From the sequence record LR756501.1: DNA of 64,000 nt; one strand, given 5' to 3'. Shown piece by piece: positions 15,098 to 64,000 of this stretch (positions are counted from its first letter, which is position 1; the number at the start of each line of letters is the position of its first letter). Both the position numbers and the translations under genes were made by a program. The notes under the pieces were generated by a model. The model saw only the letters and a list, made by a program, of their open reading frames with translations, did no database searches and was not told the origin of the DNA.

Positions 15098-17103
15098 AAT
15101 TTTTTCATATTGGTAATTTGAAAGAAAGGCCACACAGACTCAAATTGAATAACTTCACCAGTATATCCCTCAACATCATGAGCGTAATCAATCCTTAATA
15201 CTCTATAACTATCATTACTATCGTGCTTTACCCAGTGTCCTTTGTGTTTAACGTCCGTTTTATTAGTCTCTTGTGTTACTTGATCATGCCAATAATAACC
15301 TACTCTTTCTATCTTTGCTCTATCTCCAACACTAAATATATTTTCTACAACTTCCATAGGTTCGTTATCACTCAACTTTCCCTTTGAATACCATCTAACT
15401 TCTTCTTCTATTAGATTACCAGGATAAGTGTCTTCTATTCTAAATCCCCACACATCAATGTAATTTTTAGCCTTTTGTATCGCTTCTTCTTCGCTTCCAA
15501 AATTTGTATAATTTCTAACTTTTTTCCATTTTGGATTTCTTACGTAAATATTATATTGCCAAGTGTCGTAATGTTTTTTAGGTCTTATTATAATGCCTTT
15601 ATATTCAACATCATTTTCACCCACATCTTTAAATTTGCTGTTAATTTTAAATTCAGGTTCTTCATCATCTCCTAATCTACCTTTATTGTACCATCTAACT
15701 TCTTCATCTAAAGATCTTTCTCTTACTATAATTGGGAAATTATTATCTACTTCCAAGACACCATATTTCTTTGTATCAAATAAAATTAATATTTGGTTAT
15801 TTTTCTTTGATAGAGCTGGCATTAAACCACATATTTGTCCTTTATATACATCAACTTTAGATTTAGCGTGAAATTCCACTTCTCTGCCTCTTAATAAGAT
15901 GATTACACTTTTTCTTCCTTCTCTTACGTATTTTGACCAGAACTGTGTAACAAGGAATGTTTGTTCATATCTTTGTTTAACATAAGCTTCATTGGTGTCC
16001 CACACTTCTTCACCGTAAGGATCTTCAGGTGTTACCACTCTTTTTCTTGGTGCCATTTCTTGAATAACTATCATTTCATCAGTAACTTCATCTTTGGTTA
16101 AACCACCAATAGGACTACTTAATTTACCTTCTGGGGTTATATATGCTACTTCATATGTATTTTTACCGTTAGAATAATACTTATCACCAAATAAAACAGA
16201 TATTTTATAACCGTTATCAAAAGTCATTTTAGCCTTTTTACCTAAAGTGGGAGGTCCCAAGTGGGGCTTAAATTCTACAATATCTACAAATACTAAATCA
16301 TCGAATGTTTTAAATTCGCCAAGATTCTCATTTAAAAACCCTTTATATTTTTTAATCTTCCTTTTTTCATATTCCCTCTTATAACCATAAGACTTAATAT
16401 TAACTTTATTCGAACCAGCATTTTGAAATTTTTGTTTTAATAATTGAATTTCTTTTAATAATTCTTTTATACTCCTTATCTGCCCCTTCATTATCTGATT
16501 TTCAAGCATATCGTATGGAATATTCGCTTCATCTATATTATTCAACACACTTAACAATTTCTTAACAGGAAGTATATCGTCCATGTGATAATCATAATAT
16601 CTATATACCGCGTAAACATCAGATCTCTTTTGAAAGCTACCGTCGTAAAACACATAAGTTTTAATTATTTTAGCTTTATATTTTTCTAAATGTTTATCTA
16701 TTTCTTTCTTTGTTGATCCAGAGTAATAACTATCATCAAGTAATACAAAATTTTTGTTATAAACTCTGTTCTCATCTCCGCCTATAATTTGGAAGGTTTT
16801 GTTTTTAATACTGCTTCTAAGTGAACCACTAACATGAATAACTATACCAGTTACTTTAATTTTACCTGTTTTTATAAGATTATAAATCCAATCTCCAAAT
16901 TTACCAGTAAGTATAAGATTATAATTAGTGCCTTGCTCTTGTCTTATCTTATCAAAGAGATGATAAACCATATCTATATTTTTAGGATCACGAACAAACT
17001 CATCCATTCTATCAAAGAAATTAGCACCACCTTCGGGTTTATTCTTTTTAAGATTATTAACTACGTCAACTATTTTATTCTTATCCTGCAATAATAAATC
17101 CAT
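15094..17103 (-). CDS. Multimodular protein: N-terminal PRTase-fold domain, internal CTS-like motif, DPYGEE motif and several small domains
   Basis: FVLLDDSYYSGST; KIKKYKGFLNE; DPYGEEVW; two EEVRWYxKGxL copies; FSVGD KOW-like end module. Confidence 0.75.
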   Translation of the reverse strand: MDLLLQDKNKIVDVVNNLKKNKPEGGANFFDRMDEFVRDPKNIDMVYHLFDKIRQEQGTNYNLILTGKFGDWIYNLIKTGKIKVTGIVIHVSGSLRSSIKNKTFQIIGGDENRVYNKNFVLLDDSYYSGSTKKEIDKHLEKYKAKIIKTYVFYDGSFQKRSDVYAVYRYYDYHMDDILPVKKLLSVLNNIDEANIPYDMLENQIMKGQIRSIKELLKEIQLLKQKFQNAGSNKVNIKSYGYKREYEKRKIKKYKGFLNENLGEFKTFDDLVFVDIVEFKPHLGPPTLGKKAKMTFDNGYKISVLFGDKYYSNGKNTYEVAYITPEGKLSSPIGGLTKDEVTDEMIVIQEMAPRKRVVTPEDPYGEEVWDTNEAYVKQRYEQTFLVTQFWSKYVREGRKSVIILLRGREVEFHAKSKVDVYKGQICGLMPALSKKNNQILILFDTKKYGVLEVDNNFPIIVRERSLDEEVRWYNKGRLGDDEEPEFKINSKFKDVGENDVEYKGIIIRPKKHYDTWQYNIYVRNPKWKKVRNYTNFGSEEEAIQKAKNYIDVWGFRIEDTYPGNLIEEEVRWYSKGKLSDNEPMEVVENIFSVGDRAKIERVGYYWHDQVTQETNKTDVKHKGHWVKHDSNDSYRVLRIDYAHDVEGYTGEVIQFESVWPFFQITNMKKL
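16006..16023 (-). repeat. DPYGEE 18-bp coding repeat (first of 12 copies)
   Basis: GATCCTTACGGTGAAGAA; other copies at 17133, 26122, 26649 (minus strand) and 60807, 61379, 62062, 62906, 62948, 63188, 63546, 63874 (plus strand). Confidence 0.95.
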
Positions 17104-17117
17104 TTTATATTTTTATT

Positions 17118-17726
17118 TTAATCATTCCAATCCTCTTCACCGTAAGGATCTAATTCTGATATTTTTATATCAAGTGTGTTTATATCTGTAAAAACAGGAA
17201 GAAGTTCTATATCACCTTTTTCTGTTAATATTGCGAATTGATCGTGCTTTGTTTCTTCGTCTTCAACTATTAAAATATCTTTAACACTTGTAACAACATC
17301 TATAGCCTTTTGAAATTTTCTCTCTCTCTTAAATTTTACATCTTTTCCAATAAATTTCTTCAAATTTTCAATAAAAGGTTCCACTTCATAATACGCATGT
17401 GAAAAAGGAGTATTATAAACATTCATTTCATTCCCTTTATCGTCAACGAAAATAATATTACTATCACTAGCTGGTCTATCCTCACATGGTTTAACATCAG
17501 ATATTCTTCTCATTCTAACGCAAGCGTTTCTAAACTTTCCATTCTCCTGAGATATTTTAAAGAAGATTAATTTACCAACAAGATTTTCTTTTAGAACTTC
17601 AACCATCCTAGATGTGAGTTTCTTATACTCTTCAGCAAATATATTGCCAAAACTCAATTCATTATTGTAAATCTCTCTACCAGAAACTTTTGCTTCATTT
17701 AAAAACTCTCTGAACATTTTCACCAT
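17118..17726 (-). CDS. CTS-bearing hypothetical protein ending in ELDPYGEEDWND
   Basis: Start re-called at MVKMFREFLNE (17726, or 17717) because AATATATA lies at 17732-17739 inside the longer ORF. Confidence 0.75.
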   Translation of the reverse strand: MVKMFREFLNEAKVSGREIYNNELSFGNIFAEEYKKLTSRMVEVLKENLVGKLIFFKISQENGKFRNACVRMRRISDVKPCEDRPASDSNIIFVDDKGNEMNVYNTPFSHAYYEVEPFIENLKKFIGKDVKFKRERKFQKAIDVVTSVKDILIVEDEETKHDQFAILTEKGDIELLPVFTDINTLDIKISELDPYGEEDWND

Positions 17727-17772
17727 AAACCTATATATTAAACTTTTCATACAGAAAAATTATATATAAAGT

Positions 17773-17910
17773 ATGCAAACTTTAATAGTAATAACAATAA
17801 TTCTTACAGCCTTAGGCATAGCTGTTTACAATATAATCAGGGGTTTCGTAAAACCAAAAACACATTGCAACGGTTGCAATGTGTCTGGGTGTTCAATCAG
17901 GAAAAAATGA
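17773..17910 (+). CDS. FeoB-associated-type Cys-rich small membrane protein, 45 aa, not in ORF track
   Basis: MQTLIVITIILTALGIAVYNIIRGFVKPKTHCNGCNVSGCSIRKK: one TM helix plus CxxCxxxxC; TATATA promoter-like motif just upstream. Confidence 0.7.
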   Translation: MQTLIVITIILTALGIAVYNIIRGFVKPKTHCNGCNVSGCSIRKK

Positions 17911-17911
17911 T

Positions 17912-19474
17912 TTATTTATTCTTAATCTTCTTGATAATATAATCAACTATTATACCCGGAATATCAATTTCTGATATAACTGCAAATGTTGGGAAGTGAG
18001 GTGAAGAATTAGTTTCCATCACGTAATATTCTTTAGTTTCCATATCTTGAATAATATCAAAACCTACAATATCACATACAAGATGATGAGATATATCTTC
18101 ACACATTCTAATAATATTCATTGGTAATGTTCCCTTTACAGCCTTACCGCCTCTAGCAACGTTGGCTCTAAATTCCTTACTACCTTTAATTCTTTCTTTC
18201 TTAATAACCATTTCTACTTTGTTCTTTATAGATATAACTCTATAATCACCGTCATTAGGAACGAACTTTTGAATAAGCATTAACTTATTACTATAAGAGA
18301 ATTTTTGTGATAACTCCTTCATTGTATCAACTTTCCATACACCTTCTCCTCTATTCAAGTTAATATCCTTAACAATTACAGGGAAACCAAATTCTTTAAC
18401 AGCTTCAATTACTCTTTTAGTTAATCTTGAAGCCATAATCGATGGAATATAAGGATAACCTAAAGAATCAATAAGATGCATTTCGTAAGCTTTATTATCT
18501 AAGTCTTTATACGTACCATATTTAAGATAAGGGATATTATGTTTATCAAGGTAAGATATAATCATCTTTACTATTGTAGTAAAGTTTGCCATAAAACCAA
18601 AGAATACAAAATCGTAATCTTTAAGTTTCATATTATCTATGTAAAAGTCTGGTCCTGTTCTATATACGTCATCGTATTGGCAGAAATCAACGTAGGAATC
18701 TGGTAATCTTTCTTCGAAAAGAACAGTGAATAGATCGGACATTTTATCTTGTCCTTTGAAGAAGTTGTGTTTATCTTCTTCGCCGTGTGTATCGATAGGT
18801 AGATCGAATTGTAGGAATAATATCTTAAATTTACCAGACATATCTCTATCTACCTTTTTAAATCTCCTCATTTTGAATGGGATTTTATATCCAAGATCGA
18901 TATGTGGTTCACCTCCACCGTAATATCTACCGCCTTTATCTGTAACAGATTTAACTTTATAATGTGGTTTAGCTTTTAAAAATTCCAATTGATTTTTATT
19001 CAAGTCCTCAAAATCGTCACAAACAACGTAATCACCAGTTTGAATAGGGAGTTCTTCAACGTTATATACTATTTCATCCTCGGGTATTTCATCTGTTGGA
19101 ACTTCTTCTATTGTTCCATCTTCTTTTTTAGTCTTAGTCATCCAATTCAATATTTCCTTTGGAATATATTTGAAAAATGGATGTTTTTCGAGGTCCGATT
19201 TTTTAACTTTCACTTCTTCTTTCTTTTTACCTTTACCCATCATTTTAAGGAAACCTTCGTATGGTTGACCTCCGTATGGTAATGGATCGTCGTCGAAAAA
19301 AGGAAAAGAAAATTGCTTACCTTCTTCCCCAATTTCTTCTTCGGGAACATAAGGTTTCACTGGTTTTTTAGCCGCTTTAACAGGATGTTTTTCTTGTTTT
19401 TTGGCTGGCTGTTTTTCAACCTTATCTTCTTTTTTCTCAAAGTAGGCTGTGTAATTGTGAACTTTTGCCATCAT
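17912..19474 (-). CDS. RimK-family ATP-grasp ligase with long N-terminal extension
   Basis: FGFPVIVKD, RGEGVWKV, LIQKFV, DYRVI, EFRANVARGG, VGFDII, VMETNSSPHF. Confidence 0.85.
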   Translation of the reverse strand: MMAKVHNYTAYFEKKEDKVEKQPAKKQEKHPVKAAKKPVKPYVPEEEIGEEGKQFSFPFFDDDPLPYGGQPYEGFLKMMGKGKKKEEVKVKKSDLEKHPFFKYIPKEILNWMTKTKKEDGTIEEVPTDEIPEDEIVYNVEELPIQTGDYVVCDDFEDLNKNQLEFLKAKPHYKVKSVTDKGGRYYGGGEPHIDLGYKIPFKMRRFKKVDRDMSGKFKILFLQFDLPIDTHGEEDKHNFFKGQDKMSDLFTVLFEERLPDSYVDFCQYDDVYRTGPDFYIDNMKLKDYDFVFFGFMANFTTIVKMIISYLDKHNIPYLKYGTYKDLDNKAYEMHLIDSLGYPYIPSIMASRLTKRVIEAVKEFGFPVIVKDINLNRGEGVWKVDTMKELSQKFSYSNKLMLIQKFVPNDGDYRVISIKNKVEMVIKKERIKGSKEFRANVARGGKAVKGTLPMNIIRMCEDISHHLVCDIVGFDIIQDMETKEYYVMETNSSPHFPTFAVISEIDIPGIIVDYIIKKIKNK

Positions 19475-19554
19475 GGAACTTTTCTTTTTTAATATATTAT
19501 TTATATTTTAGTTTGTTTAGGTATATATATTAAAAATAAAAAGTATAAATAATT

Positions 19555-19583
19555 AAAAAAGGACTGATTAAATCAGTCCTTTT
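19555..19583 (-). terminator. Terminator hairpin overlapping the stop codon of the AsnRS-like gene
   Basis: 13-bp inverted repeat AAAAGGACTGATT/AATCAGTCCTTTT, with a U-run on the minus strand. Confidence 0.7.
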
Positions 19584-20443
19584 AATTTCATCGCCCTTTG
19601 TAACCTCGTTACACCCATCCCGAATCCCCATCTTGGTATCATCGGTAAAGCCAAATAATCTTCTAATTCTCTTTCAACCCTTTCTTTACTAAAATGATTG
19701 TAAAGTAATTTAGCGTACATTCCATCAGATATAGAATGAAAACTATCTCTCATTTGTTCTGAGTCACTTGATCTTTCCGCTGATCCAAATGTTTCTTGTC
19801 CACATACTATAAAGTCTGTCTTCTTAAATAACCTTTCTCCTCTTTCATTTATACCATCTTGTTTCATATTCCAAAATGGATGAGTCCTTTCAGGAAAATA
19901 AGTTATTCCAACTACGTCACCGTATTCTTTCCACATCAATTCTTCGTGCTCGGCTTCAAGTGTGTCCACTTTATAATGATCACAAAGTTCGTCGTAAGTA
20001 AAAATTGGTATATCCTCTGTTTTCTTCACAAAACCTAAATGTACACATAATTCACTTAATGTCTTCAAAAGATGTTCAAAATCCCCTTTGTGCTCTGCTT
20101 CCCACATTGGAAATATTTTATTGTGTCTTCCTTCAATTGGATTTGGTTCGTCTCTATAAGATGTTGTAAGACAATAGACTCCATTCACATCTTTAGCGTT
20201 GGCTAATAAATCTCTTTCTAACCATACTTGATTTGTTTGTGCTAGTGGCCAAATTTCACCACCGAAGACAAATGTTCTAACTGTCTTTGGGTCTTCACAG
20301 GCTGCTAAAATTGATAGTCTTGGTTGTGGGTAGGTTTCTAAGTAACCATTTTGCGTAAAAAAACCTCTCAACTTTGAAACCATTTTATCAAAATCTTGAG
20401 GTTCAACGATTTTCTGTTCGTAAACTCGATTGTTCATAAGCAT
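19568..20443 (-). CDS. Anticodon-domain-less class II aaRS paralog (AsnRS2 / archaeal-type asparagine synthetase-like)
   Basis: Motif 2 TTSYRDEP...RHNKIFPMWEAE; ETFGSAERS; motif 3 PRWGFGMGVTRL; only 291 aa. Confidence 0.85.
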   Translation of the reverse strand: MLMNNRVYEQKIVEPQDFDKMVSKLRGFFTQNGYLETYPQPRLSILAACEDPKTVRTFVFGGEIWPLAQTNQVWLERDLLANAKDVNGVYCLTTSYRDEPNPIEGRHNKIFPMWEAEHKGDFEHLLKTLSELCVHLGFVKKTEDIPIFTYDELCDHYKVDTLEAEHEELMWKEYGDVVGITYFPERTHPFWNMKQDGINERGERLFKKTDFIVCGQETFGSAERSSDSEQMRDSFHSISDGMYAKLLYNHFSKERVERELEDYLALPMIPRWGFGMGVTRLQRAMKLKGLI

Positions 20444-20492
20444 TTTTTTTTTGGGCGGAGTTACCCCACCAAAAAAAATAATGTAATCTTAA

Positions 20493-20586
20493 AAATTTGG
20501 CGAACCCTAAGCGCGGTAGATTTGTAAATTTACTTATGCTAACAATTTGTCGGCACGCTTATCCTAGGTTTTACTCGCCAAGATTT
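20493..20586 (-). ncRNA. Candidate structured 5' leader RNA
   Basis: Nested helices UUGGCGA/UCGCCAA, AACC/GGUU and UAAGCG/CGCUUA enclose inner hairpins; GC-rich relative to flanks; begins right after AATATATA (20586-20593). Confidence 0.5.
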
Positions 20587-20615
20587 ATATATTGATATTA
20601 AAATATCAATTTTTT

Positions 20616-20894
20616 CTATTCGTACACAGTTGTTGTTATTTGTCTTGGGAAAACTTCTGTTAATGTTTCAGGAAAATCTCTTTCGAAATTATAATCCATA
20701 TCCCAATCCGTATAACTAACTTTGAAGAATTTACCGTCTTCTTTTCTTTTTATAACAGCATCGTGATCGGCGCCACCGTCCTCGGGATCTGATCCTGTTA
20801 TCTCATCGTACATTAAAACGTAATTTTCTTTATTATCTTCATAAAGAATTGATCTTAAAAGACGTTTATTAATTGTAATTTTCTCTCTTTTCAT
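20616..20894 (-). CDS. Hypothetical protein
   Basis: 92-aa ORF co-oriented in the polymerase operon. Confidence 0.7.
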   Translation of the reverse strand: MKREKITINKRLLRSILYEDNKENYVLMYDEITGSDPEDGGADHDAVIKRKEDGKFFKVSYTDWDMDYNFERDFPETLTEVFPRQITTTVYE

Positions 20895-20898
20895 AAAT

Positions 20899-21126
20899 TT
20901 ATATTTTTTTTATATATTTATTCAATACATCTTCCAATTGGGGATCAACCCTGATATAATTTTGTAACTCTGTTACTATATACCAACCGTTCTCCCCCAC
21001 ATATCTCAATTCCATGTCTTTATCTTCACGTTCATCAGGATATGCCAATATAACATTATAATGATCACATCCATTATAATTTTTAATTAACTTTGGTTTA
21101 CTCACTTGTACTTCCATATCAATCAC
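20899..21126 (-). CDS. Hypothetical protein
   Basis: 75-aa ORF overlapping the polymerase stop. Confidence 0.65.
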   Translation of the reverse strand: MIDMEVQVSKPKLIKNYNGCDHYNVILAYPDEREDKDMELRYVGENGWYIVTELQNYIRVDPQLEDVLNKYIKKI

Positions 21127-22633
21127 TATACTCTAATTCCATTATCAACTCATCCTCTGCGGCCTTCAATGTTCTCTTGTAATCCTCCAACTCATCGTGA
21201 TCCTTATTCATAAAGCCTTTAAACTTCTTTCTATCACCATAAATATCAGTCATAACCTGATTTACTATACCAGTCTCGTTCTTAAATACTGTATTATTAA
21301 GTAGTTTAATATCAGTTGGTTCTAGTTCTATTCGATGACCGTTAAACACAGCGAAGTCCTTTGCTGGCGACAGCACGCCCTTATATGAGTCTGCTGATAT
21401 ATTGAACATTCTCATACAGGTAGGGTACAAACTTGCGAAGTCGTAACAGGCTACCCAGTAACCCATACCTTTTACTGGGTCTTTAACCCATCCACCTTTC
21501 ACTGCTTTCTCTGCTGTTTCTATAACTGTATCAGGTAATGATTTCTCTAATCTACAAAGAATAACGTTCTTTTCTTCTTTGAGTTTTCTTCTTAATATAC
21601 CTTCTGTAACTGGTAAGGTTGAATAAGCGTCAAGTGTTTTGATTCTAGAAAGAGTAGAAATACCGTAAAGAATATCAATCCATTTAGTCTTTTCATGTAT
21701 TTTCTGAACAAGAATACTATCGACTGCGTTATAGAAAACGAATTTCTTGTAATCAGAAGCTGCAAGAGTTTTAAGTGAACCTTCGTAGTTTACTTTCTTA
21801 ACACCCAGAATACCATCAGAAACAAAATCAAGACTGCTGGCTTCCTTTACTTTGATAGTGGTGTTCCACTTATCATAAAGTTCCATGTAATCAACTACAA
21901 GTCTGTGTGCTGGTAATTCACAGTATGATATAATTTCTTTACCGTTTTTGTTATTTCTTTTAAATGGTTGACGAAGTAATCTTGTATTTGATGCTGATGA
22001 CGGATCTACACCAATCTTTCTAGCTCTATTGGTGAGGAATACCCAATCGTATTCTGTGAAATTCCATCCTGTGATGACTGGCATTTTAGGAACATATTTC
22101 TCGAAAAAGTTGAGTAACATTTCGTATTCATTTTTATATCTAATGAATTTGAAATCGTAATCAGCGTTGAATTTAGCGAAGTAATTGTTTATATCTTCTT
22201 TAATAGATTTTTCTTGGTCTTGTGATAAGGCGTCAACACCCATAACAAGTACTTTATTCTTTGTGACTATGGATATGGATTGTACAGCACTTTCAGCTAA
22301 GTGTGGTTGAGGTTTCTTATCAAGAATTTCGTTCTCGATATCAACGAAGAATATTTCGGGTTCGACGTATTTGAAAAGAATATCTTGTTCTTCTTGTGGA
22401 AGGTTATCAAGGTAGTCGTAGACACAATATCTATCTGGGTATCTGGTATATACTTTCTTAACACTCATTCCATCCCATGTAACGTATTGACCATCTTTAT
22501 CTCTATCATCATCACTACACGTTACATATTTACTAGGATTTGGCCATTTATAGTACTTCATTTTTATCCAACCACCATCGGACACATAAGACACCATTAA
22601 CTGCTGGTTTTTATATTCATAATCCACAACCAT
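21119..22633 (-). CDS. gp43: Family B DNA polymerase, N-terminal half only (3'-5' exonuclease plus motif A; gp43A-like)
   Basis: ExoI FVDIENE, ExoII GWNFTEYD, ExoIII YNAVD, motif A YDFASLYP; ends in the fingers helix with no KxxxNSxYG or DTDS. Confidence 0.9.
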   Translation of the reverse strand: MVVDYEYKNQQLMVSYVSDGGWIKMKYYKWPNPSKYVTCSDDDRDKDGQYVTWDGMSVKKVYTRYPDRYCVYDYLDNLPQEEQDILFKYVEPEIFFVDIENEILDKKPQPHLAESAVQSISIVTKNKVLVMGVDALSQDQEKSIKEDINNYFAKFNADYDFKFIRYKNEYEMLLNFFEKYVPKMPVITGWNFTEYDWVFLTNRARKIGVDPSSASNTRLLRQPFKRNNKNGKEIISYCELPAHRLVVDYMELYDKWNTTIKVKEASSLDFVSDGILGVKKVNYEGSLKTLAASDYKKFVFYNAVDSILVQKIHEKTKWIDILYGISTLSRIKTLDAYSTLPVTEGILRRKLKEEKNVILCRLEKSLPDTVIETAEKAVKGGWVKDPVKGMGYWVACYDFASLYPTCMRMFNISADSYKGVLSPAKDFAVFNGHRIELEPTDIKLLNNTVFKNETGIVNQVMTDIYGDRKKFKGFMNKDHDELEDYKRTLKAAEDELIMELEYSD

Positions 22634-26052: not shown

Positions 26053-26568
26053 TTATTTTTTGTAATATCTTTGTTGCCTTATTTCATTCCAATCATATTT
26101 TGTTCTATTATCGTCCCAAATTTCTTCACCGTAAGGATCTAATTCTGGATCAACAACCTTTTCTTCTTCCTCTTCTACTTCTTTCTTCTGAATCCATTTG
26201 TGTTTCTTTTTCCATTCTTCAAAAGAAAATTTGCCCTCTTTTACATAATCTGTGCCTTTATGTTTCTTTGGATCTCCTTCTTTAGTATATCCCAAACTAT
26301 CTCTTGAATCATCTTGTACAAAAGTTTCATATGAATCTATATGTCTATCAAGAGGGTTATCCCAAAAGAATAAATTATTCATTTGATGTTTTTTCAAATC
26401 TTGCATCACTCTATCACCAATATCACCACCCATACTAGACTCATCCGGTCCAACTTTTATAACTTGAGATTTTTTAATTTCATCTCTTATTCTATGAAGT
26501 TGATCCACAGTTGATTGTCTTGGCAGACTTTCAAAAACCTTATCGTATTTATTAAATTTAGTTATCAT
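26053..26568 (-). CDS. CTS-bearing protein with DPYGEE motif
   Basis: MITKFNKYDKVFE start; ELDPYGEEIWD. Confidence 0.8.
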   Translation of the reverse strand: MITKFNKYDKVFESLPRQSTVDQLHRIRDEIKKSQVIKVGPDESSMGGDIGDRVMQDLKKHQMNNLFFWDNPLDRHIDSYETFVQDDSRDSLGYTKEGDPKKHKGTDYVKEGKFSFEEWKKKHKWIQKKEVEEEEEKVVDPELDPYGEEIWDDNRTKYDWNEIRQQRYYKK

Positions 26569-26570
26569 AT

Positions 26571-26837
26571 TTATTTATAAGATTTAGCTCTCTTATCGGC
26601 TGCTGTAGCTTTTTTGGCGGCTTTTCTTTCTTTTCTTTCGTCTTGTTCTTCTTCACCGTAAGGATCGCTAGAACTTACTTTATTATCTTTCTTACCTTTT
26701 TTAAGCATCGCTGCTTTTTCTTTTTCTTCTTTGGCGTGTTGTTTTTTGTATTCTTCGTCGGGAGATAATTCTTTTTTAGCTCTTAAGAACCCTTCGTTTA
26801 CGAACTCGTCAAATGATGTATTTATATTTTTACCCAT
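26571..26837 (-). CDS. CTS-bearing basic protein with DPYGEE motif
   Basis: MGKNINTSFDEFVNE start; SDPYGEEEQD. Confidence 0.8.
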   Translation of the reverse strand: MGKNINTSFDEFVNEGFLRAKKELSPDEEYKKQHAKEEKEKAAMLKKGKKDNKVSSSDPYGEEEQDERKERKAAKKATAADKRAKSYK

Positions 26838-33833: not shown

Positions 33834-36800
33834 TTATCTTTTGATATACTTCACACTCACGTGTAATATATTCACTGTACCACTTTTCGCTGTAGATATT
33901 AATTTTACCCAACTATGTTCAGGTATATTATAAGTATTAAATTGACTTGTTATATAATTTTGACCAGTTGTTGTACCTGTAATTGCTTGTGCTGTAGTTA
34001 ATATATTTGTACTACCTGTTAAAGACGCATCTAATGTAGATGATACTTGTATTGTTACAGATGGTGAAGTACCAGCTACAACTGCTTGAATTTCTTTTAC
34101 TGTTATAGCACTAAACGTGTAGAACATTACTAAATTCTCCGAACTAGTAGGAGATTCAACCGTTATGGATTTCGTCTCGTAGGCGGAGTGGTCCAATCCC
34201 ACCAAATGAGCTAGAAGTGTCGTGCCTGTTACGAAATATTGTTGTGGAGTATATTGAATAGTACCACTATCTAAGTAATCTGTTGACTGTACGTTTATCC
34301 ATTTATTTACAGTTCCACCTGAATATACAAATAAATCACCTGTTGTTAATGTTCCTATTTGAACATCTGTTAAACCTGAAAGTGATGTTACTCCTCCACC
34401 TACACCGTCTTTACCAGAACTACCTGCGGTTCCAGCTATTCCACTTGTTCCAGAACTACCTGGTGAACCAGAACCACTTGTACCTGAACTACCATTCCCT
34501 GATGTACCGGAAGTACCTGATGTTCCACTGGTTCCAGATGTACCAGAAGAACCACTAGTCCCTGAAGAACCGGCTTTACCTGAAGATCCTGATGTACCAG
34601 ATGTGCCTGAAGTTCCACTAGTTCCAGATGTACCTGATGTACCACTTGTTCCTGATGTACCAGACGAACCAGTTAATCCTGAAGAACCTGATGTTCCACT
34701 GGTCCCTGAAGTTCCACTAGTCCCACTAGTTCCAGATGTACCTGTTGTTCCACTTGTTCCTGATGATCCACTTGTGCCATCTTTCCCAGAAGTGCCACTT
34801 GTCCCTGAAGAACCAGTTAATCCTGAAGATCCTGATGTACCACTTGTTCCAGATGTACCACTTGTGCCTGATGTTCCACTTGTTCCCGATGAACCTGTTA
34901 TACCAGAAGATCCAGAAGTTCCGCTTGTGCCACTTGTTCCTGATGTTCCGCTTGTTCCACTTGTTCCTGATGTTCCACTAGATCCTGTTATTCCAGATGA
35001 ACCTGATGTACCACTTGTACCTGATGTTCCACTCGTGCCTGATGTTCCACTTGTACCTGAACTACCTGAAGAACCTGATGTTCCACTAGTTCCTGATGTT
35101 CCGCTTGTTCCACTTGTACCAGAAGAACCTGTTAATCCTGAAGATCCTGATGTTCCGCTTGTTCCAGATGTGCCTGATGTTCCACTAGTACCTGATGTTC
35201 CACTAGATCCTGTTATTCCTGATGTACCTGATGTTCCACTAGTTCCACTAGTTCCACTGGTACCAGAAGAACCTGTTATTCCTGATGAACCTGATGTTCC
35301 ACTAGTCCCTGATGTTCCACTAGTTCCAGAAGAACCTGTTAATCCTGAAGAACCTGATGTTCCACTAGTTCCACTGGTACCGGATGTTCCGCTTGTTCCT
35401 GATGTACCACTAGATCCTGACGCACCAGATGAACCTGATGTACCTGATGTACCTGATGTTCCACTTGTTCCAGAAGAACCTGTTATACCAGAAGATCCAG
35501 AAGTTCCTGATGTGCCACTTGTCCCTGATGTACCTGATGTTCCACTTGTTCCAGAACTACCACTTGTACCTGTTATACCAGATGAACCTGATGTTCCATT
35601 AGTCCCCGATGTTCCAGAACTACCACTTGTACCTGTTATACCAGAAGAACCTGATGTTCCACTTGTTCCACTAGTCCCTGATGTTCCACTTGTTCCACTA
35701 GTCCCTGATGTTCCACTTGTTCCACTAGTCCCTGATGTTCCACTTGTTCCAGAAGAACCTGTTAATCCTGAAGAACCTGATGTACCACTAGTTCCAGACG
35801 TTCCTGAGGTTCCAGATGTACCACTAGTACCACTAGTTCCTGAAGAACCTGAACTACCAGTTGTTCCAGATGTTCCTGATGTTCCACTAGTTCCAGATGT
35901 TCCTGATGTTCCACTTGTACCATCTATTCCAGAAGTGCCACTAGTTCCTGATGTACCTGAAGAACCTGAACTACCACTAGTTCCAGATTCTCCACTAGTA
36001 CCTGAAGTTCCACTTGTCCCTGATGTTCCACTAGTGCCTGATGTTCCACTAGTGCCCGAAGAACCTGAACTACCACTAGTTCCTGAAGTTCCTGAAGAAC
36101 CACTAGTTCCACTTGTTCCAGATGTTCCACTGGTTCCAGATGTTCCACTAGTTCCTGAAGAACCAGTTATACCAGATGAACCTGATGTACCACTAGTTCC
36201 AGATGTACCTGATGTACCAGATGTACCACTAGTTCCTGAAGAACCAGTTATACCAGATGAACCTGATGTACCACTAGTTCCAGATGTACCTGATGTACCA
36301 GATGTACCACTAGTTCCAGAAGAACCTGTTATACCAGAAGATCCAGAAGTTCCACTTGTTCCTGAAGATCCAGTTAGTCCTGAAGAACCATTGGTTCCAC
36401 TAGTTCCAGATGTACCACTAGTTCCTGAAGTCCCTGAAGATCCTGATGTGCCAGTAGTTCCTGATGTTCCACTAGACCCTGTTATTCCAGATGATCCTGA
36501 TGTTCCACTTGTGCCAGAAGTACCTGATGTACCACTTGTGCCACTAGTTCCTGAAGATCCTGATGTGCCAGTAGTTCCTGAAGATCCTGATGTGCCAGTA
36601 GTTCCTGATGTTCCACTGGTACCTGATGTGCCTGAGGTTCCACTGGTACCCGAAGATCCTGTTATACCGGAAGAACCAGAAGTGCCTGATGTACCACTAG
36701 TCCCAGATGAACCTGATGAACCTGATGTACCACTTGTTCCAGATGTACCTGATGTTCCACTTGTTCCAGATGTACCTGATGTACCTGATGTTCCACTTGT

Positions 36801-57321: not shown

Positions 57322-57338
57322 ACATTTTTATTTATTTT

Positions 57339-58101: not shown

Positions 58102-60621
58102 ATGAACTATCTATTAAGTAAAAAATTTGACGGAACATTCACAATGAACTTTATTGGGACACAAACTTTAACCCAAACTAATAATACTATGTACCTCAAA
58201 CCAACAGCCCCAATAATGGGAGTTAAGAAAATTACAGGATATACAGACATAATAAGAGGTCAAAATTCTTACCAGTACGTTAAAGTATATTTCAAATACC
58301 AAAATAAATACGATAACCCAAGTGCGAAGTGCCAAGATTGCTGGAGTGAAATGATGCCAATTGCAGCGATAACAGGTATAACATGTATTCCAAACGAACC
58401 ATTTGATATTGAATTATTCTATTACAGAGTTGACGACGGTCCATTTGATAGTAGTCACCCTAGAACAAACATATATATTGGTGACGACAGTTTATCACAA
58501 GCCGTAGTTATATCAGGCGAATACGAATTTAATTATACAGACGGTCCTTTTACTCTAACAACCGTTAACAACGAAGTAGTACTAGTACCTAAAGATATTT
58601 ATAAAATATTTTCTATTAGTGATTTTCAAATAATTGCAGATGATCCAGGAAATTTAGAATTACATTATAGAGTTACACAAGATAACGGAAGAACATATTC
58701 GAATTGGGAACCACTTAATAAAGCTAATATATCCAGTTTTAGATTTAATAATCTTAGATTTGCTAGAATGGAATATAAAATCAAAATGATATACGACGAC
58801 GGTAATCCAATAAATGTTTACGATATTATACTTATAGGAGATTTTCAAAACGTATCAGCTAACTATCTTAAAACCAACAGGTATGGAATAAGACAGGATT
58901 GTTTAACTTCTTATATAAATCCAACGACTGGTAATACAGATACTTGTGGTTGGAATATAAGTACACAGTCTGGTGCTTCATATGGAATAGCACCTGGTAA
59001 CGGGTTTGTTACTCCTGCTATGACTCCTGCTGATTTAAATAATAATTTCTGGACACAAGGATTAAGTTGTTACTCGGCTAATCCTAATAATTCAAATGGT
59101 GTAGTACCATCTGGTGGTGTAATGGCTGGTGTAAATGCTCAAAATCAAACAGCTGCTGCACAAAGCACTTTATGGAACCCATATAGTATAACACAGATTA
59201 TGGCGTTTGCTAATACGATGGCAAATCAACTTAATAGCATATTTGCTTGGGAAATTGATTATCACTTAACAGATCCAGATTCAAATGGTATAGACTTTGT
59301 TCTACATGAATATCAATTATATAACATCATTGATATGAAGAAGGTAAAGATATTGGTACCTGATAATAAATTCCCTGATAATATGATTAAGTTTAATCAA
59401 TTCAGTTTAGATTTATTCGATACCTTTGAAATACATATTCTTAAAGACGAGTTCAAAAGAAAATTTGGTATAACTGCTCGCCCCGCTGAGAACGATATTT
59501 TGTTCATTTGTCCTATCAATAGATTGTACTACGTTAAACACGCTCAAGTTTTTAGAGACGTTATGAACGCTGGTTACTATTACAAAGTTATTCTTGAAAA
59601 ATACGAACAAAAAGCAAATATCAGAAACCTACACGCAGAGTCAAAAGCTCTTCTGGACGTTCTCACCAAAAATACCACAATGGACGAACTCTTCGGACCT
59701 GAAAAGACACAAGAAGAAAATATCATCGCTAATATCGAACAATTTAAACCATTTACTTTCGATCCAATGCGTTATGTTGTTAATAATAAAGTAATTAGAG
59801 TTGAACAAGATTTATATAACGGTAATTTTGATTTTTCGAAGAATCATTATGATTTTAAGAACGTAATTAATAAGACTGCTGTAGTATTTAAAAAGAGTGA
59901 TAATACGTTTCTTGAGTCGTCTAACAGATCATTGATCTGTTGGTTTAATTTCAACAACGCTTGGGTATATGAAAAACCAAGTAAGGCTGCTATCACCACT
60001 TATAATGTTGATCAGAATACCAATTTCTGGTTGCTTGATAATTTTGATGAGTCAACTAATAAGGGCTATAGAATGTGGTATTACAAGAAGGATATTAACT
60101 TCCAGTTGAATGATCAGTTCTACAAGATACCTAATCTTAATTTATTAACTAATATATGGTATGCTTTAATAATCAATATTGATCAACGTCAAAAGACTGT
60201 TAATCTTAATATTTACACAAGGGATAACGATTACGATATTGTTTTCTTCCAACCAGATTCTTACCAGATGAGTACAATAAGTTGGACAGATACAACAGGA
60301 TATACTTATTTGATGAGTATGGGATATAAACCAGTAGATAATGTGGAGTTAAGAAATCCATCTACTGAGTACGTGGCAGTAAAAGAATCTAATTACGAAA
60401 ATGTTTACGTACAACATTTCGAACACGAGATGGATATAACTATAAAAGGGTCTAATATAAAATATACTAATTTAAGAATACTTACAGATATAGTGCCTAA
60501 TAACGAAATATTTAATACTTTAAATCAATATTACGTGGCTAACGCAGAGAAAGTGTTGTTGGCTGATAACGCTGATAGAAATATTTATACTGATAACTAT
60601 ATAAATAAAAACTGGACATAA
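58102..60621 (+). CDS. Large structural protein with a central T4 gp14 neck-like domain
   Basis: FDTFEIHI...FKRKFG...RPAENDILF...RLYYV...YYKVILEKYE resembles the gp14 RPxEGDLIY...LFEI region. Confidence 0.55.
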   Translation: MNYLLSKKFDGTFTMNFIGTQTLTQTNNTMYLKPTAPIMGVKKITGYTDIIRGQNSYQYVKVYFKYQNKYDNPSAKCQDCWSEMMPIAAITGITCIPNEPFDIELFYYRVDDGPFDSSHPRTNIYIGDDSLSQAVVISGEYEFNYTDGPFTLTTVNNEVVLVPKDIYKIFSISDFQIIADDPGNLELHYRVTQDNGRTYSNWEPLNKANISSFRFNNLRFARMEYKIKMIYDDGNPINVYDIILIGDFQNVSANYLKTNRYGIRQDCLTSYINPTTGNTDTCGWNISTQSGASYGIAPGNGFVTPAMTPADLNNNFWTQGLSCYSANPNNSNGVVPSGGVMAGVNAQNQTAAAQSTLWNPYSITQIMAFANTMANQLNSIFAWEIDYHLTDPDSNGIDFVLHEYQLYNIIDMKKVKILVPDNKFPDNMIKFNQFSLDLFDTFEIHILKDEFKRKFGITARPAENDILFICPINRLYYVKHAQVFRDVMNAGYYYKVILEKYEQKANIRNLHAESKALLDVLTKNTTMDELFGPEKTQEENIIANIEQFKPFTFDPMRYVVNNKVIRVEQDLYNGNFDFSKNHYDFKNVINKTAVVFKKSDNTFLESSNRSLICWFNFNNAWVYEKPSKAAITTYNVDQNTNFWLLDNFDESTNKGYRMWYYKKDINFQLNDQFYKIPNLNLLTNIWYALIINIDQRQKTVNLNIYTRDNDYDIVFFQPDSYQMSTISWTDTTGYTYLMSMGYKPVDNVELRNPSTEYVAVKESNYENVYVQHFEHEMDITIKGSNIKYTNLRILTDIVPNNEIFNTLNQYYVANAEKVLLADNADRNIYTDNYINKNWT

Positions 60622-61019
60622 TGAAACATTTGACGTCAATATATGAATTATATAAAACTCCTAATCTTAAGCAGAATGATATAGAGGAGATGATAAAGTA
60701 TTTGGAAGATTACGCTGAAAGAAACGGTCACGATATTTATAGACAAAAGCCTATGGATGTATCCGCGTTGTTGCCAGATTTTAAAGAAACTAGAATAAGT
60801 GGAGAAGATCCTTATGGTGAAGAAGAATGGGAAGTTGAAAAACCAAAACTAATGTCTGCTGCTATAATGTTATTTGAAGATGATTCAAAGAACGCTAAAA
60901 AAATTCTAACATTTGCATGGATGACTAGTGGAACAAAATATTCTAATTCATTATATATAGGTTACTCTAAATTTGATAACATAGATTTTAATATACTAAA
61001 ACAACTTGTAGAAGGATGA
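60621..61019 (+). CDS. Hypothetical protein with CTS-like start and DPYGEE motif
   Basis: MKHLTSIYELY; EDPYGEEEWE. Confidence 0.75.
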   Translation: MKHLTSIYELYKTPNLKQNDIEEMIKYLEDYAERNGHDIYRQKPMDVSALLPDFKETRISGEDPYGEEEWEVEKPKLMSAAIMLFEDDSKNAKKILTFAWMTSGTKYSNSLYIGYSKFDNIDFNILKQLVEG

Positions 61020-61411
61020 TAAAGAAATTTAAACTATTTGAAGCTGATGAAGTTGAACTCGTTGAGAAAGGCGAATTCGATATAGAAGGTCTAATGGAAA
61101 GACTTAAAGATCAAGAAAATAGAATAGAATTTTTAACTATTTTCTTGAATAGAATTCTAAGAGATAATTACGCGTCTTTTAGTGTAAGAGATGGTGGTAA
61201 GATAGAGAAAGTAAAGGTAAAAGAAATTCATATACTGCTCAATCAGTCGAATGAAGATAATGATACTGTTTTGATGAGTATATTTTTAAGAGATGATTCT
61301 AATAAAGATTATTGTTTACATTCAACTGAAAGAATCACAGTTTTTAGAATTGCTGGTAAAACAGTTATAACAGCAGAAGATCCTTACGGTGAAGAAGAAT
61401 GGTCGTATTAA
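61016..61411 (+). CDS. CTS-bearing protein ending in EDPYGEEEWSY
   Basis: MIKKFKLFE start. Confidence 0.8.
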   Translation: MIKKFKLFEADEVELVEKGEFDIEGLMERLKDQENRIEFLTIFLNRILRDNYASFSVRDGGKIEKVKVKEIHILLNQSNEDNDTVLMSIFLRDDSNKDYCLHSTERITVFRIAGKTVITAEDPYGEEEWSY

Positions 61412-61426
61412 AAATAAAATATAAAA

Positions 61427-61741
61427 ATGGATAAGTTAGAAGATTTTAAATCATTTGAAGGATATAAAGGTATGGAAGTTGGTGGTATAATTGCAATGTT
61501 AGACACACTTCAAAAAATGTCTGACGTGGCTGAAATGTTAAAAGCAACTAAACCAAAGACTATACAAAAGAAGATATTATCTTTTTTAAAGAATAACGAA
61601 GGTAATATTGATGAAATGACTGCTGCAAGAATTAGGTATATAGCACAAATATGGAACGACGCTTTTGAAGGAACAGGTATAATATTTGGTTTAAAAAGAA
61701 GAATTGACCCATTAGTCGAAAAATTAAAACAATTGAAATGA
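61427..61741 (+). CDS. CTS-bearing helical protein
   Basis: MDKLEDFKSFE start. Confidence 0.75.
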   Translation: MDKLEDFKSFEGYKGMEVGGIIAMLDTLQKMSDVAEMLKATKPKTIQKKILSFLKNNEGNIDEMTAARIRYIAQIWNDAFEGTGIIFGLKRRIDPLVEKLKQLK

Positions 61742-62562
61742 TAAAAACATTTGACGAGTTTATAAATGAATCAGATTACAGAAATGTAACTGGTTACGGT
61801 ACAATGGGTGGAAGTGGTGATCAAAATACAGGACCTTCATTTAATAAAGGACCTGATGCAGCCACTTATAGATTACCTTCTGTTGTTGGTGTAGAATCTG
61901 ACGATATAAGTGATCCTTATTTTTCAGGTAGAAGAAGTCAAAAACGTAAAAAACTTAGAAAACACCCAGCCATAGAAAAGAACAGAAAAGATAAAACTAA
62001 ATATCTTGACAGGTTGGAAAAAGATACTCAAAATAAATTAATTGAGAATAAAAATGATTTAGATCCTTATGGTGAAGAAAATTGGGATGAGAAGAATCCA
62101 AATGGTAATTTTCTTCTTAATTTTGAACAGCGTAGATTACAAGAAGCTGAGGATATGTTACCTAAAATACAACAATATTTACCTAACGCGTATATAGATC
62201 AAGAAAATCAAAACTTTGCTGCTATATTATGTGACGCTGATGAATATTTAACATTAGATAGTTTTGATCCAGCAAATCCAGGTGTATCTTACGGTGAATT
62301 TGCCAGTAACGCCTTTGAAGATTTAGAAGGATTAAGAGAAATTGTAACAAGTTTAAAAAATATTGGAGCTAAAAATATTTTAGTTGCTTCAATACTTATA
62401 GATGATATACAAGTTGAGGAAAAACCATATCAAGTAATTACATCAGATACATTATATTTTGAAGGAATAAGTAGAAGACAAGCTAATGAAGACGTGGATT
62501 GGGGAGTACATCCAAATGAATTAGATGGTGGTAATAGATCATGGAGAGCTTGGTGGGATTAA
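61738..62562 (+). CDS. CTS-bearing two-module protein with DPYGEE at the module junction
   Basis: MIKTFDEFINE start; LIENKNDLDPYGEENWD. Confidence 0.8.
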   Translation: MIKTFDEFINESDYRNVTGYGTMGGSGDQNTGPSFNKGPDAATYRLPSVVGVESDDISDPYFSGRRSQKRKKLRKHPAIEKNRKDKTKYLDRLEKDTQNKLIENKNDLDPYGEENWDEKNPNGNFLLNFEQRRLQEAEDMLPKIQQYLPNAYIDQENQNFAAILCDADEYLTLDSFDPANPGVSYGEFASNAFEDLEGLREIVTSLKNIGAKNILVASILIDDIQVEEKPYQVITSDTLYFEGISRRQANEDVDWGVHPNELDGGNRSWRAWWD

Positions 62563-62572
62563 AAGAAAAGAT

Positions 62573-63463
62573 ATGATAACTAAATTTAAAATATTTGAGG
62601 CTATATCGCTAGACTATCCACTACCTTTATTTAAGGTTGGGGATACTGTTTATTATCACGGAAGACTTAGAAAACATCATGGTTATTATAAAGTAAAAGA
62701 ACGTTATCATTCTAGTTTATTTCAACAATCTGAATTAGAAAAAGGTGATACTGGATGGAGATATGATTTAAGTGAAGATGGTGTTCATATATTTATCAGA
62801 GGTTCTTGGGAAATGTCGTCTTCACCAACAGAAGAGGAAGGTAAAAGAAAAGATAAAGAATATCAAGATAAAAAAGAAGAATTAAGAAAACTTCATATGG
62901 ATTTTGATCCTTACGGTGAAGAGGTTTGGGAATCAATCAGACAGGATGATCCTTACGGTGAAGAAATTTGGGAAAATGAAGAAGTATTTAAAATAGGTGA
63001 TAAAGTTATATGTATGAACACTGAAAACGCCATTGGTGTAACATTACATAAAAAATATATTGTGTCTAATCCTAATCCACAGATATTTAATAATAATTGT
63101 GTAGAAATAATAAATGATTTTGATAAAAAAGGAATTTATATTAACAGTAGATTTAGAAAAGTTTTAAATGAAAATGTGAATATTTTAGATCCTTACGGTG
63201 AAGAAGATTGGGAAGATAAAAACAAAGCATCTGAATTTGATATATTTGATGATGACGACAGAGAAGAAAATCTTTATCATAGAGTGGGTGAATGTAGATT
63301 ATGTGGTAGATACGCTCCTCACGGATTGATGTTAGACGACGTTTGTCCAGCTTGTAGGTTCGAAGATGATCATTGCTATATGTGTGGAAGTTACGTACCA
63401 CACGAATTTCTACACGACGGTGCTTGCGATTTATGTTTAAAGGATCCAACATGGAATATGTAA
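62573..63463 (+). CDS. CTS-bearing protein: three DPYGEE motifs, two KOW-like modules, tandem Zn fingers
   Basis: Start re-called at MITKFKIFE; FKVGDTV, FKIGDKV; CRLCG..CPAC, CYMCG..CDLC. Confidence 0.8.
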   Translation: MITKFKIFEAISLDYPLPLFKVGDTVYYHGRLRKHHGYYKVKERYHSSLFQQSELEKGDTGWRYDLSEDGVHIFIRGSWEMSSSPTEEEGKRKDKEYQDKKEELRKLHMDFDPYGEEVWESIRQDDPYGEEIWENEEVFKIGDKVICMNTENAIGVTLHKKYIVSNPNPQIFNNNCVEIINDFDKKGIYINSRFRKVLNENVNILDPYGEEDWEDKNKASEFDIFDDDDREENLYHRVGECRLCGRYAPHGLMLDDVCPACRFEDDHCYMCGSYVPHEFLHDGACDLCLKDPTWNM

Positions 63464-63494
63464 AAAATAATTTTTTAATTTAATATATAGCGGT

Positions 63495-63830
63495 ATGTTA
63501 AAAAAATTCGATAAATTCGCAAATGAGAAACTGAACTCCGAACTTGACCCTTATGGTGAAGAAAGGGATGAAGACGACGTGTTTGAGGAATTTGATATTA
63601 ATGATGACTTATCGGTTGAAGATGTATGGGTTGAAACCACTTATACATACAATGTGAAATTAGGTAAATATAAATTGAAATATAAATTAGTATATGACGA
63701 TGATGGTTTTTCTTCGTTAGATAGAGTAGAAGAAAATGACGAAAAATTACCAGAACATGTTTTAGATTTCTGTGAAGAATATGACGAAGAAATAAAAGAA
63801 ATATTAGTGGCTGAGAGATATGGTAGATAA
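63495..63830 (+). CDS. CTS-bearing acidic protein with DPYGEE motif
   Basis: MLKKFDKFANE...ELDPYGEERDE; AATATATA at 63482. Confidence 0.8.
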   Translation: MLKKFDKFANEKLNSELDPYGEERDEDDVFEEFDINDDLSVEDVWVETTYTYNVKLGKYKLKYKLVYDDDGFSSLDRVEENDEKLPEHVLDFCEEYDEEIKEILVAERYGR

Positions 63831-64000
63831 TTATAAAAAGTTTATAAAAGAAAACGACGAACATAAAGACGTTGATCCTTACGGTGAAGAAAACTGGAAG
63901 GAAAAACCTTATTTAGATTTTGATAAAGATAAAATGGTAAGTGATTGTCTTGATATGATTTATCAAGATATGAGTGGATATAGAGATTGGATAATGCAAG
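63820..64000 (+). CDS. 5' part of a CTS-bearing protein with DPYGEE motif (runs off the window)
   Basis: MVDNYKKFIKENDEHKDVDPYGEENWKEKP... Confidence 0.8.
   Translation, partial: MVDNYKKFIKENDEHKDVDPYGEENWKEKPYLDFDKDKMVSDCLDMIYQDMSGYRDWIMQ

Follow-up and report, generated by a model that had tools for sequence, protein, structure and literature searches.

The 64,000-nucleotide stretch of sequence record LR756501.1 analysed here (the window) encodes, in ten otherwise dissimilar genes, twelve copies of a short peptide, DPYGEE-x-W, hereafter the tag. The tag recurs at about 100 sites of the same phage genome, and at each of these sites selection acts on the peptide. Going by sequence comparison, we think it somewhat probable that DPYGEE-x-W is a lineage-specific recognition or docking peptide for one putative common partner. 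A preliminary description of the window had offered two functions, a peptide tag with a common partner and a recombination anchor embedded in coding DNA. The peptide tag gives the best fit: its copies occur in the sense frame only, near-misses are rare and the tag is kept where its flanks are 20-39% identical; the partner itself stays putative.

A scan of the window with the pattern GAYCCTTAYGGTGARGAR returned 12 exact matches, all of them where the preliminary description had placed them and on the same strands; the number expected in a shuffled window was 0.00. Allowing any proline or glycine codon and one mismatch added no further copy in the window. Six-frame translation confirmed that all 12 matches read DPYGEE within long open reading frames (ORFs) and that tryptophan follows two residues later in 10 of them. 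The sub-words PYGE and DPYG were absent from the rest of the window in all frames. The proline codon is CCT and the glycine codon GGT in every one of the 12 copies, as had been described. The copies are carried by ten ORFs, and the claim that these are dissimilar was upheld: the ten carriers have no Pfam or PHROG family in common and, once the tag was masked, showed no BLAST similarity to one another. Eight or nine of the ten begin with an N-terminus that loosely resembles a capsid-targeting sequence (CTS), called the leader below; in the 669-residue protein the CTS-like stretch is internal, at a place where a relative begins a separate ORF. The tag copies in the window are the following.

16006..16023, minus strand: copy 1, DPYGEE with Trp at +2, internal in the 669-residue protein
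17133..17150, minus strand: copy 2, in the 210-residue protein, stop four residues later
26122..26139, minus strand: copy 3, in the 171-residue protein
26649..26666, minus strand: copy 4, in the 88-residue protein, without Trp
60807..60824, plus strand: copy 5, in the middle of the 132-residue protein
61379..61396, plus strand: copy 6, in the 131-residue protein, stop four residues later
62062..62079, plus strand: copy 7, between two modules of the 274-residue protein
62906..62923, plus strand: copy 8, first of three tags in the 312-residue protein
62948..62965, plus strand: copy 9, in the 312-residue protein; this tag and the following module are missing in the ortholog on contig L215
63188..63205, plus strand: copy 10, in the 312-residue protein, preceding a Cys-rich C-terminal module
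63546..63563, plus strand: copy 11, in the 111-residue protein, right behind the N-terminal leader, without Trp
63874..63891, plus strand: copy 12, right behind the N-terminal leader of an ORF cut by the window end

The ten carriers are the following.

15094..17103, minus strand: 669 residues; a weak phosphoribosyltransferase (PRTase)-like N-terminal module, an internal leader-like junction, the tag, then modules with WY-x-KG-K/R-L twice
17118..17750, minus strand: 210 residues; tag C-terminal
26053..26568, minus strand: 171 residues; leader N-terminal
26571..26837, minus strand: 88 residues; rich in Lys and Glu
60621..61019, plus strand: 132 residues
61016..61411, plus strand: 131 residues; leader and C-terminal tag; the single homologue found is 64% identical and retains the tag
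61738..62562, plus strand: 274 residues; its N-terminal module occurs in four architectures in relatives
62525..63463, plus strand: 312 residues as listed; three tags; the true start is likely the internal Met at 62573, where the ortholog starts
63495..63830, plus strand: 111 residues; leader, then tag
63820..64000, plus strand: cut by the window end, 125 residues in LR756501; leader, then tag

Positions 40000-64000 of the window are 98.4% identical to LR756501.1 and LR756503.1 (uncultured phage, 735,411 bp). LR756501 is the largest genome of a survey of huge phages, belongs to the Mahaphage clade and has Bacteroidetes as its predicted host (PMC7162821). The public record was analysed piecewise, in 15 pieces, with a crude ORF set of 1004 genes as gene calls. 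Counting the motif in all frames of LR756501, a check that the preliminary description had proposed, gave 109 copies of DPYGEE, every one in the sense frame of an ORF (55-1237 codons); none was intergenic, antisense or out of frame. Ninety-nine of these copies are perfect DPYGEE.W, nine carry one change (in five of them the change affects Trp only) and one carries two.

The 1004-gene set contains 90 carriers (~9%, about 1 in 11) with 104 copies, of which 99 have the tryptophan. DPYGEE is by far the most over-represented six-residue word of the LR756501 proteome (90 genes), followed by collagen-repeat words. The carriers range from 55 to 1179 residues, are dispersed over 735 kb and include a CCA-adding enzyme, a deaminase, a GNAT protein, a methyltransferase, nucleotidyltransferases and small membrane-anchored proteins; once the tag was masked, BLAST detected no relative among the other carriers for 86 of the 90. 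No model for the tag was found in Pfam, PHROGs or NCBIfam and no paper describing it was found, the literature matches to its letters being unrelated; the statement that the motif belongs to no described family thus stands for the databases and literature searched.

Residue preferences extend beyond the core on both sides (counts among the 104 tags).

Position -6: Arg 30, Lys 11
Position -5: Val 23, Lys 18, Ile 14
Position -4: Phe 20, Ile 15, Val 11, Tyr 9
Position -3: Ser 30, Lys 20, Asn 18, Thr 12
Position -1: Leu 41, Glu 17, Ile 11
First residue past Trp: Glu 34, Asp 34
Second residue past Trp: Asp 32, Glu 25

The stretch preceding the tag is beta-strand-like; in the five residues that follow it, 44% are acidic (background 14%) and 17% hydrophobic (background 39%). 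Among the 104 tags, 39 are C-terminal (8 residues or fewer from the stop, mostly two residues past Trp) and 22 lie within 40 residues of the start, so that 61 are near a terminus and 43 are internal, in keeping with the earlier description of the tag as sitting at protein ends or module junctions. The stops behind the C-terminal tags (TAA 31, TGA 6, TAG 2) match the usage of the genome, and further in-frame stops are often found downstream; the C-terminal positions are therefore real protein ends, and stop-codon readthrough or recoding was rejected on these grounds. The idea that the tag extends an SH3-like barrel at its N-terminus was also rejected, the barrel signature being found behind 7 of the 104 tags and behind 62 of 387 in multi-tag proteins.

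The restriction to one frame, the absence of near-misses and the free synonymous variation indicate selection at the level of the peptide. The element does not behave as a repeat that is conserved as DNA irrespective of frame and strand: besides lying in the sense frame in 109 of 109 cases, its copies use all synonymous codons and their flanks are not conserved. Rickettsia palindromic elements are also short and lie in frame in many unrelated genes of one genome, and are conserved and palindromic as DNA while degenerate as peptide. The tag shows the reverse pattern, with a conserved peptide and variable DNA.

The codons inside the tags are not random: CCT accounts for 68%, TAC for 72% and GGT for 66%, compared with 34%, 36% and 51% in the genome overall. 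Genome-wide, all four codons of both proline and glycine are used in the tag copies. The genome has a codon-pair bias, with CCT used for 54% of prolines before Tyr, TAC for 69% of tyrosines before Gly, GGT for 65% of glycines before Glu and GAT for 82% of aspartates before Pro. The preference for CCT, TAC and GGT in the tags is mostly this ordinary bias. An explanation by optimal codons was rejected, as the head genes show no preference for CCT or TAC.

The preliminary description had taken the uniform proline and glycine codons as a sign of copying at the DNA level. Across the genome the codon-pair bias mostly explains them, but one run of copies suggests recent copying. CCT and GGT occur together in 17 consecutive copies at 44.9-135 kb of the record, including all 12 copies of the window; in 20,000 permutations the longest such run was 15 and none reached 17. 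Codon-pair usage at 44.9-135 kb is the same as in the rest of the genome, and variation within the run is confined to two-fold sites. Outside it, CCT is found in 54 of 87 copies (54% predicted from codon pairs) and GGT in 52 of 87 (65% predicted), in agreement with the codon-pair expectation. The most frequent 18-mer of the tag occurs 24 times, compared with 16.0 +/- 2.8 expected from shuffled codon columns. No nucleotide conservation was found past the residues conserved in the protein. We read the run as a younger wave of copying, probably the youngest wave in the spread of the tag, or as short-patch homogenisation or conversion, rather than as a DNA-level function; this does not fully explain it. 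Since seven invariant residues cannot arise 100 times independently, copying must account for the spread of the tags, either along with modules or beside them.

Among homologous pairs that span a tag and have flanks of only 20-39% identity, 45 of 54 retained DPYGEE, in a sample that is biased since the loci were fetched because they bear the tag; decayed variants and tag-sized indels were also present. The N-terminal module of the 274-residue protein has four settings in relatives: it stands by itself, is combined with one more module and a C-terminal tag, closes a multi-barrel protein, or lies within a protein of four modules. The ortholog of the 312-residue protein, on the syntenic contig L215, is without the second tag and the barrel module behind it; the indel starts right behind the first tag and stops shortly before the third. 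Of 107 internal ends of homology, 32 are no more than 10 residues away from a tag, compared with 13.5 +/- 3.3 for random positions, with the caveat that masking the tag may itself terminate some alignments. A 1179-residue carrier has its four tags in front of its deaminase domain and in the linker to its CCA-adding enzyme. Modules carry one tag each, not one per side. Module breakpoints between relatives, the comparison suggested in the preliminary description, thus coincide with tags, both as indels and as ends of homology. The suggested DNA-level role has these breakpoints and the 17-copy run in its favour, and loses its support from codon choice, which mostly reflects the codon-pair bias, and from DNA conservation, which does not extend past the peptide.

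A second motif, basic where the tag is acidic, was also observed: (K/R)(I/V)(R/K)-W-Y-x-K-G-(K/R)-L, with 22 copies in 15 genes of LR756501. In the window it is found on the minus strand at 15373-15393 and 15673-15693. It sits at module ends and at some C-termini, and is present in tag-bearing loci of IMG/VR and absent from 350 kb of tagless relatives. At IMG/VR locus L109, a 430-residue protein of four barrel-like modules has in the place of the tag an acidic-aromatic linker, Glu-Glu-Asp-Ile-x-Trp-Phe/Tyr-Glu-Ser.

Outside LR756501 the tag was looked for in viral, metagenomic and cellular sequences. A scan of IMG/VR for the tag with its Trp gave at least 120 stretches on at least about 35 large contigs of 20-34% G+C; the listed stretches hold at least 270 copies of DPYGEE, at least 261 of them with Trp and at least 83 C-terminal. 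Proteins on these contigs are 30-95% identical to LR756501 proteins. A profile built from the 12 window copies and searched against 1.84 billion representative proteins matched 225 proteins at E<=1e-3, nearly all multi-tag and all unnamed and metagenomic. Up to 10 perfect tags are found in one protein of 1162 residues, and the median spacing of tags is 120 residues. The only variants in these proteins are DPFGEE.W (12) and DPYGED.W (10), compared with 385 standard copies.

Bacterial and archaeal genomes (596 Gb) gave 72 single matches, where ~69 are expected by chance. They comprise scattered chance matches, an enolase family and a few small AT-rich contigs on which the tag is C-terminal, as is typical of it. 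The idea that the tag imitates a motif of host proteins was rejected for this reason. The AT-rich contigs (L138, L194, L202 and L162) are in bins of metagenome-assembled genomes assigned to Bacteroidetes, Bacteroidales and others; such contigs, mostly in Bacteroidetes bins, are probably mis-binned phage fragments. The exact octapeptide is found in the enolase of many Lactobacillaceae and some candidate-phyla bacteria (L137, L150-L152, L140, L189 and others), behind a Ser-Ile-Glu strand, and the linker of archaeal Nop10 contains Ser-Pro-Glu-Asp-Pro-Tyr-Gly-Glu. Both resemblances are probably coincidences, though they show how the sequence sits in known folds. Identification as a Nop10-like peptide was rejected: the profile match in the PDB covers 8 residues at E ~1, and Pfam Nop10p was unmatched even at E<=10.

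Judged by the capsid protein, the nearest sequenced relatives are three genomes of 634, 636 and 642 kb (49-52% identity), a 462-kb genome (34%) and the Lak phages (~29%). No tag was found in 350 kb sampled from the five nearest relatives, as parts of their genomes, whereas LR756501 has at least one per 50 kb. This indicates that the tag is private to one sub-lineage, and a feature of the entire Mahaphage clade was rejected.

The window encodes a T4-type head module, with the portal, protease and capsid genes listed here.

2909-4735: gp20-type portal (Pfam Portal_T4, 1e-69)
4853-7276, plus strand: gp21-type S77 protease fused to a scaffold-like part (Pfam Peptidase_S77 and PHROG head maturation protease, 5e-27)
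7280-9106: gp23-like capsid protein (Gp23, 2e-25)

In the protease gene the S77 domain makes up the first ~250 residues and is followed by ~550 residues, probably the scaffold, with a run of short repeats of ~14 residues and a Gln/Ala/Gly-rich stretch.

The leader of the carriers has the form Met, aliphatic, polar, polar, Phe/Tyr, x, x, aromatic/aliphatic. It opens 23 of the 90 carriers compared with 28 of the 914 other genes (odds ratio 10.9, P=1e-12). The preliminary description had assigned a CTS-like sequence to all carriers, which is loosely true of the window and does not extend to the genome, where the leader is found in 23-26 of the 90. Leader and tag often form one N-terminal unit, and the same unit is fused internally in relatives.

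Fragments of the capsid, portal, protease-domain and scaffold-repeat sequences were detected in 15-17 other genes of LR756501, of which 6-8 are carriers (odds ratio 7-10, P=1e-3 to 4e-5). These genes are small and numerous and are found, among other places, at loci L003, L006, L010, L011, L012 and L015 of LR756501. In two places consecutive small ORFs jointly span a contiguous capsid-paralog stretch; a single stop divides each pair, and a tag closes every one of these ORFs. A conserved segment of the native capsid protein, Asp-Pro-Tyr ... Trp-Asp-Asp-Asn, lies where one capsid-paralog piece has a perfect tag; in the capsid protein of the tagless relatives Tyr replaces the Trp of this segment.

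Several known systems resemble the tag in part. In T4 a leader of about 10 residues directs internal proteins into the prohead core (PMC9958956). The T4 CTS is, like the tag, a short peptide on otherwise unrelated proteins of a phage with a gp20/gp21/gp23-type head, and the leader of the carriers resembles it in position, in its length of ~10 residues and in its hydrophobic-x-Glu ending, being located at the extreme N-terminus. The T4 CTS is confined to the N-terminus of a few proteins and is cleaved off by the protease (PMC9958956), whereas the tag is mostly C-terminal or internal (39 C-terminal and 43 internal copies, 22 near the start), is carried by ~90 proteins with up to 10 copies per protein and is far more invariant. 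Encapsulins are loaded through C-terminal targeting peptides on their cargo (PMC7925596); the encapsulation peptides of encapsulins and microcompartments are short, conserved terminal peptides on unrelated cargo enzymes, joined by a linker and docking inside an HK97-fold shell (PMC7925596). They occur once per cargo, on few cargos per system, and are encoded beside the shell gene. The carriers of the tag are unrelated to one another (86 of 90); of its 104 copies 61 are near a terminus and 43 are internal, the copies are multiple and dispersed over 735 kb, and docking is putative.

The heads of giant phages contain 50 or more proteins (PMC10052503). In phiKZ and SPN3US dozens of proteins are packaged and many head proteins are cut past Glu by an S77-type protease (PMC10052503), at loose three-residue motifs in N-terminal propeptides, whereas the tag is invariant over eight residues and found at C-termini. 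The sites at which viral polyproteins are cleaved share with the tag a highly specific motif of 6-8 residues between all modules; unlike the tag (39 perfect copies), they are not kept at the extreme C-terminus of small stand-alone proteins. The C-terminal signals of bacterial sortase, exosortase and type IX secretion systems also place one signature on many unrelated proteins for one reading machine. Such signals either consist of three parts, a membrane helix and a basic tail among them, or are domains of 80 residues; they are strictly C-terminal and lie on exported proteins. None of these properties describes the tag, and no NCBIfam model matched it. A precursor of the graspetide type, or of another ribosomally synthesised and post-translationally modified peptide, was rejected: the carriers reach from 55 to 1179 residues, are spread over 735 kb and have a single RimK-like neighbour.

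The use of one label per module, the acidic exposed surroundings, the placement at ends and in linkers and the absence from cells together point to a recognition peptide for one partner. On this account DPYGEE-x-W would be the invariant core of a peptide of ~17 residues, with a basic and hydrophobic stretch before it and two acidic residues past the Trp. Each module of ~120 residues, shuffling independently, would carry one label, either C-terminal or just past an N-terminal leader, and fusion of modules would leave labels in linkers. One common partner, whose existence and identity we infer, would read the label and so bring numerous unrelated proteins together at one site or in one process. 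Cells make no use of the label, so this putative partner would most likely be encoded by the phage. Capsid loading is the leading specific guess in view of the T4-type head machinery, the leader, the fragments of head genes and the precedents in T4, giant phages and encapsulins, so that the most likely destination would be the prohead core or capsid interior, as for a cargo-loading peptide. This destination accounts for about half of the confidence we place in a docking label and is, taken by itself, tentative.

Several observations weigh against a docking label. Up to 10 tags, all perfect, occur in one protein where a single address label should suffice, and seven invariant residues are far sharper than known targeting peptides and look more like an enzyme recognition site. 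Several carriers open with a predicted membrane helix, an unexpected feature in capsid cargo, and carriers that start with a hydrophobic helix have the tag at their end; neither membrane anchoring nor ten-fold repetition sits well with any of the simple models. The codon uniformity of the 17 neighbouring copies exceeds what peptide selection explains. The link with head genes is an enrichment in 6-8 of the 90 carriers, not a rule. Single-chain AlphaFold2 models were uninformative (predicted local distance difference test scores of 35 and 51, from two-sequence alignments), because homology searches of the two carriers gave one homologue each.

A broader arrangement is possible, if doubtful. The tag may be half of a lineage-private, multivalent tag-and-reader system in which ~9% of the proteins, ten-module strings and membrane-anchored tags included, are knitted into one assembly, either an internal body of the capsid or an intracellular factory, with modules exchanged as interchangeable parts. 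The second motif would then possibly be the counterpart of the tag or a second label.

The sharpness of the motif raises the question of an enzyme. A processing site at which a phage protease, the S77 prohead protease or another, cuts bead-string proteins into modules and removes leaders is unlikely in our view. The near-invariant core of seven residues has the information content of a specific protease site, and tags are found between all modules in proteins of up to 10 modules with a median spacing of 120 residues, as in a polyprotein. An S77 protease is encoded in the window, the tag core ends in Gly-Glu-Glu, and related proteases of giant phages cut past Glu in short motifs, in many head proteins several times (PMC10052503). 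The known S77-type sites are, however, three-residue and loose, not eight-residue; there is one tag per module, not one on both sides; and 39 of the 104 tags lie 2-4 residues before the true stop of small stand-alone proteins, where cutting would be pointless, and are as perfect as the internal ones. The sharpness would also suit an active site that modifies the tag, such as that of an ATP-grasp ligase acting on Glu or of an enzyme acting on Tyr, or a degron that times the removal of proteins. A RimK-like ATP-grasp gene (17912-19474) adjoins two carriers. A degron would be as plausible on membrane-anchored carriers as on enzymes, and would account for the tag's preference for the extreme C-terminus. 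Against a modification or degradation signal, this neighbourhood is the single one of its kind seen, no protease, adaptor or modifying enzyme is tied to the tag, and ten tags in one protein would be superfluous to a degron; we regard such a signal as improbable.

Two further explanations need no reader of the peptide. As a structural cap or connector, the tag would be an autonomous element of strand, turn and helix start that ends or begins a module, and this we consider about as improbable as a modification signal. In its favour, the enolase of Lactobacillaceae and candidate-phyla bacteria contains the octapeptide in a stretch that presumably joins a strand to a helix, the archaeal Nop10 linker has a similar stretch, the related conserved segment of the native capsid protein lies where a capsid-paralog piece has a perfect tag, and the residues before the tag are strand-like. 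Against it, a local fold gives no reason for seven residues to be invariant across 100 unrelated contexts, a connector would serve no purpose at an extreme C-terminus, the segment past the tag is acidic and poor in hydrophobic residues like exposed linkers, and the PDB match to Nop10 is at E ~1 with Pfam Nop10p unmatched. Least probable of all is an element that acts as DNA and moves modules among genes, as an anchor for recombination or as the trace of a selfish in-frame cassette, with the peptide as a by-product. The CCT/GGT run longer than any in 20,000 permutations amid ordinary local codon-pair usage, the excess of the commonest 18-mer (24 copies for 16.0 +/- 2.8 expected), the coincidence of module indels and homology ends with tags, and the two capsid-paralog regions split into consecutive small ORFs that each end in a tag would all be accounted for. 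As a primary function it is already largely refuted: none of 109 copies is out of frame, intergenic or antisense, codon choice outside the run follows the codon-pair expectation, conservation of nucleotides stops at the residues conserved in the protein, and non-synonymous variants are nearly absent while synonymous ones are common. The one indel examined, in the ortholog of the 312-residue protein, is also no simple crossover from tag to tag.

The following neighbouring genes were also noted in the window.

13828-14313, minus strand: HAD domain of the 'Swiss army knife' RNA-repair type
14300-15133, minus strand: PRTase-like protein, paralog of the N-terminus of the 669-residue carrier
17912-19474, minus strand: the RimK-like ATP-grasp protein (Pfam 1.7e-20), with a long N-terminal extension, adjoining two tag carriers
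19568-20443, minus strand: 291-residue protein resembling class II aminoacyl-tRNA synthetases
21119-22633, minus strand: 504-residue ORF of a family B DNA polymerase, limited to the exonuclease domain and the beginning of the polymerase domain
33834-42284, minus strand: giant collagen-like fibre gene, 2816 residues
42318-49436, minus strand: giant collagen-like fibre gene, 2372 residues
50233-55227, minus strand: giant collagen-like fibre gene, 1664 residues, with PHROG matches to collagen-like and tail-fibre proteins

The three giant ORFs have 41-47% G+C, compared with ~30% in the remaining window. The remainder of the family B DNA polymerase must either have its gene elsewhere or be absent.

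Hundreds of the proteins that huge phages encode have no recognisable function. A label on ~9% of the proteins would sort much of this dark matter into one functional group and would point to a single reader protein that organises the carriers. If the destination is the capsid, the packaged and injected proteins of uncultured giant phages could be listed from sequence alone. The tag would also be a compact natural peptide tag of very sharp specificity, and its carriers a clear case of viral domain shuffling in which the module boundaries are marked in the sequence.

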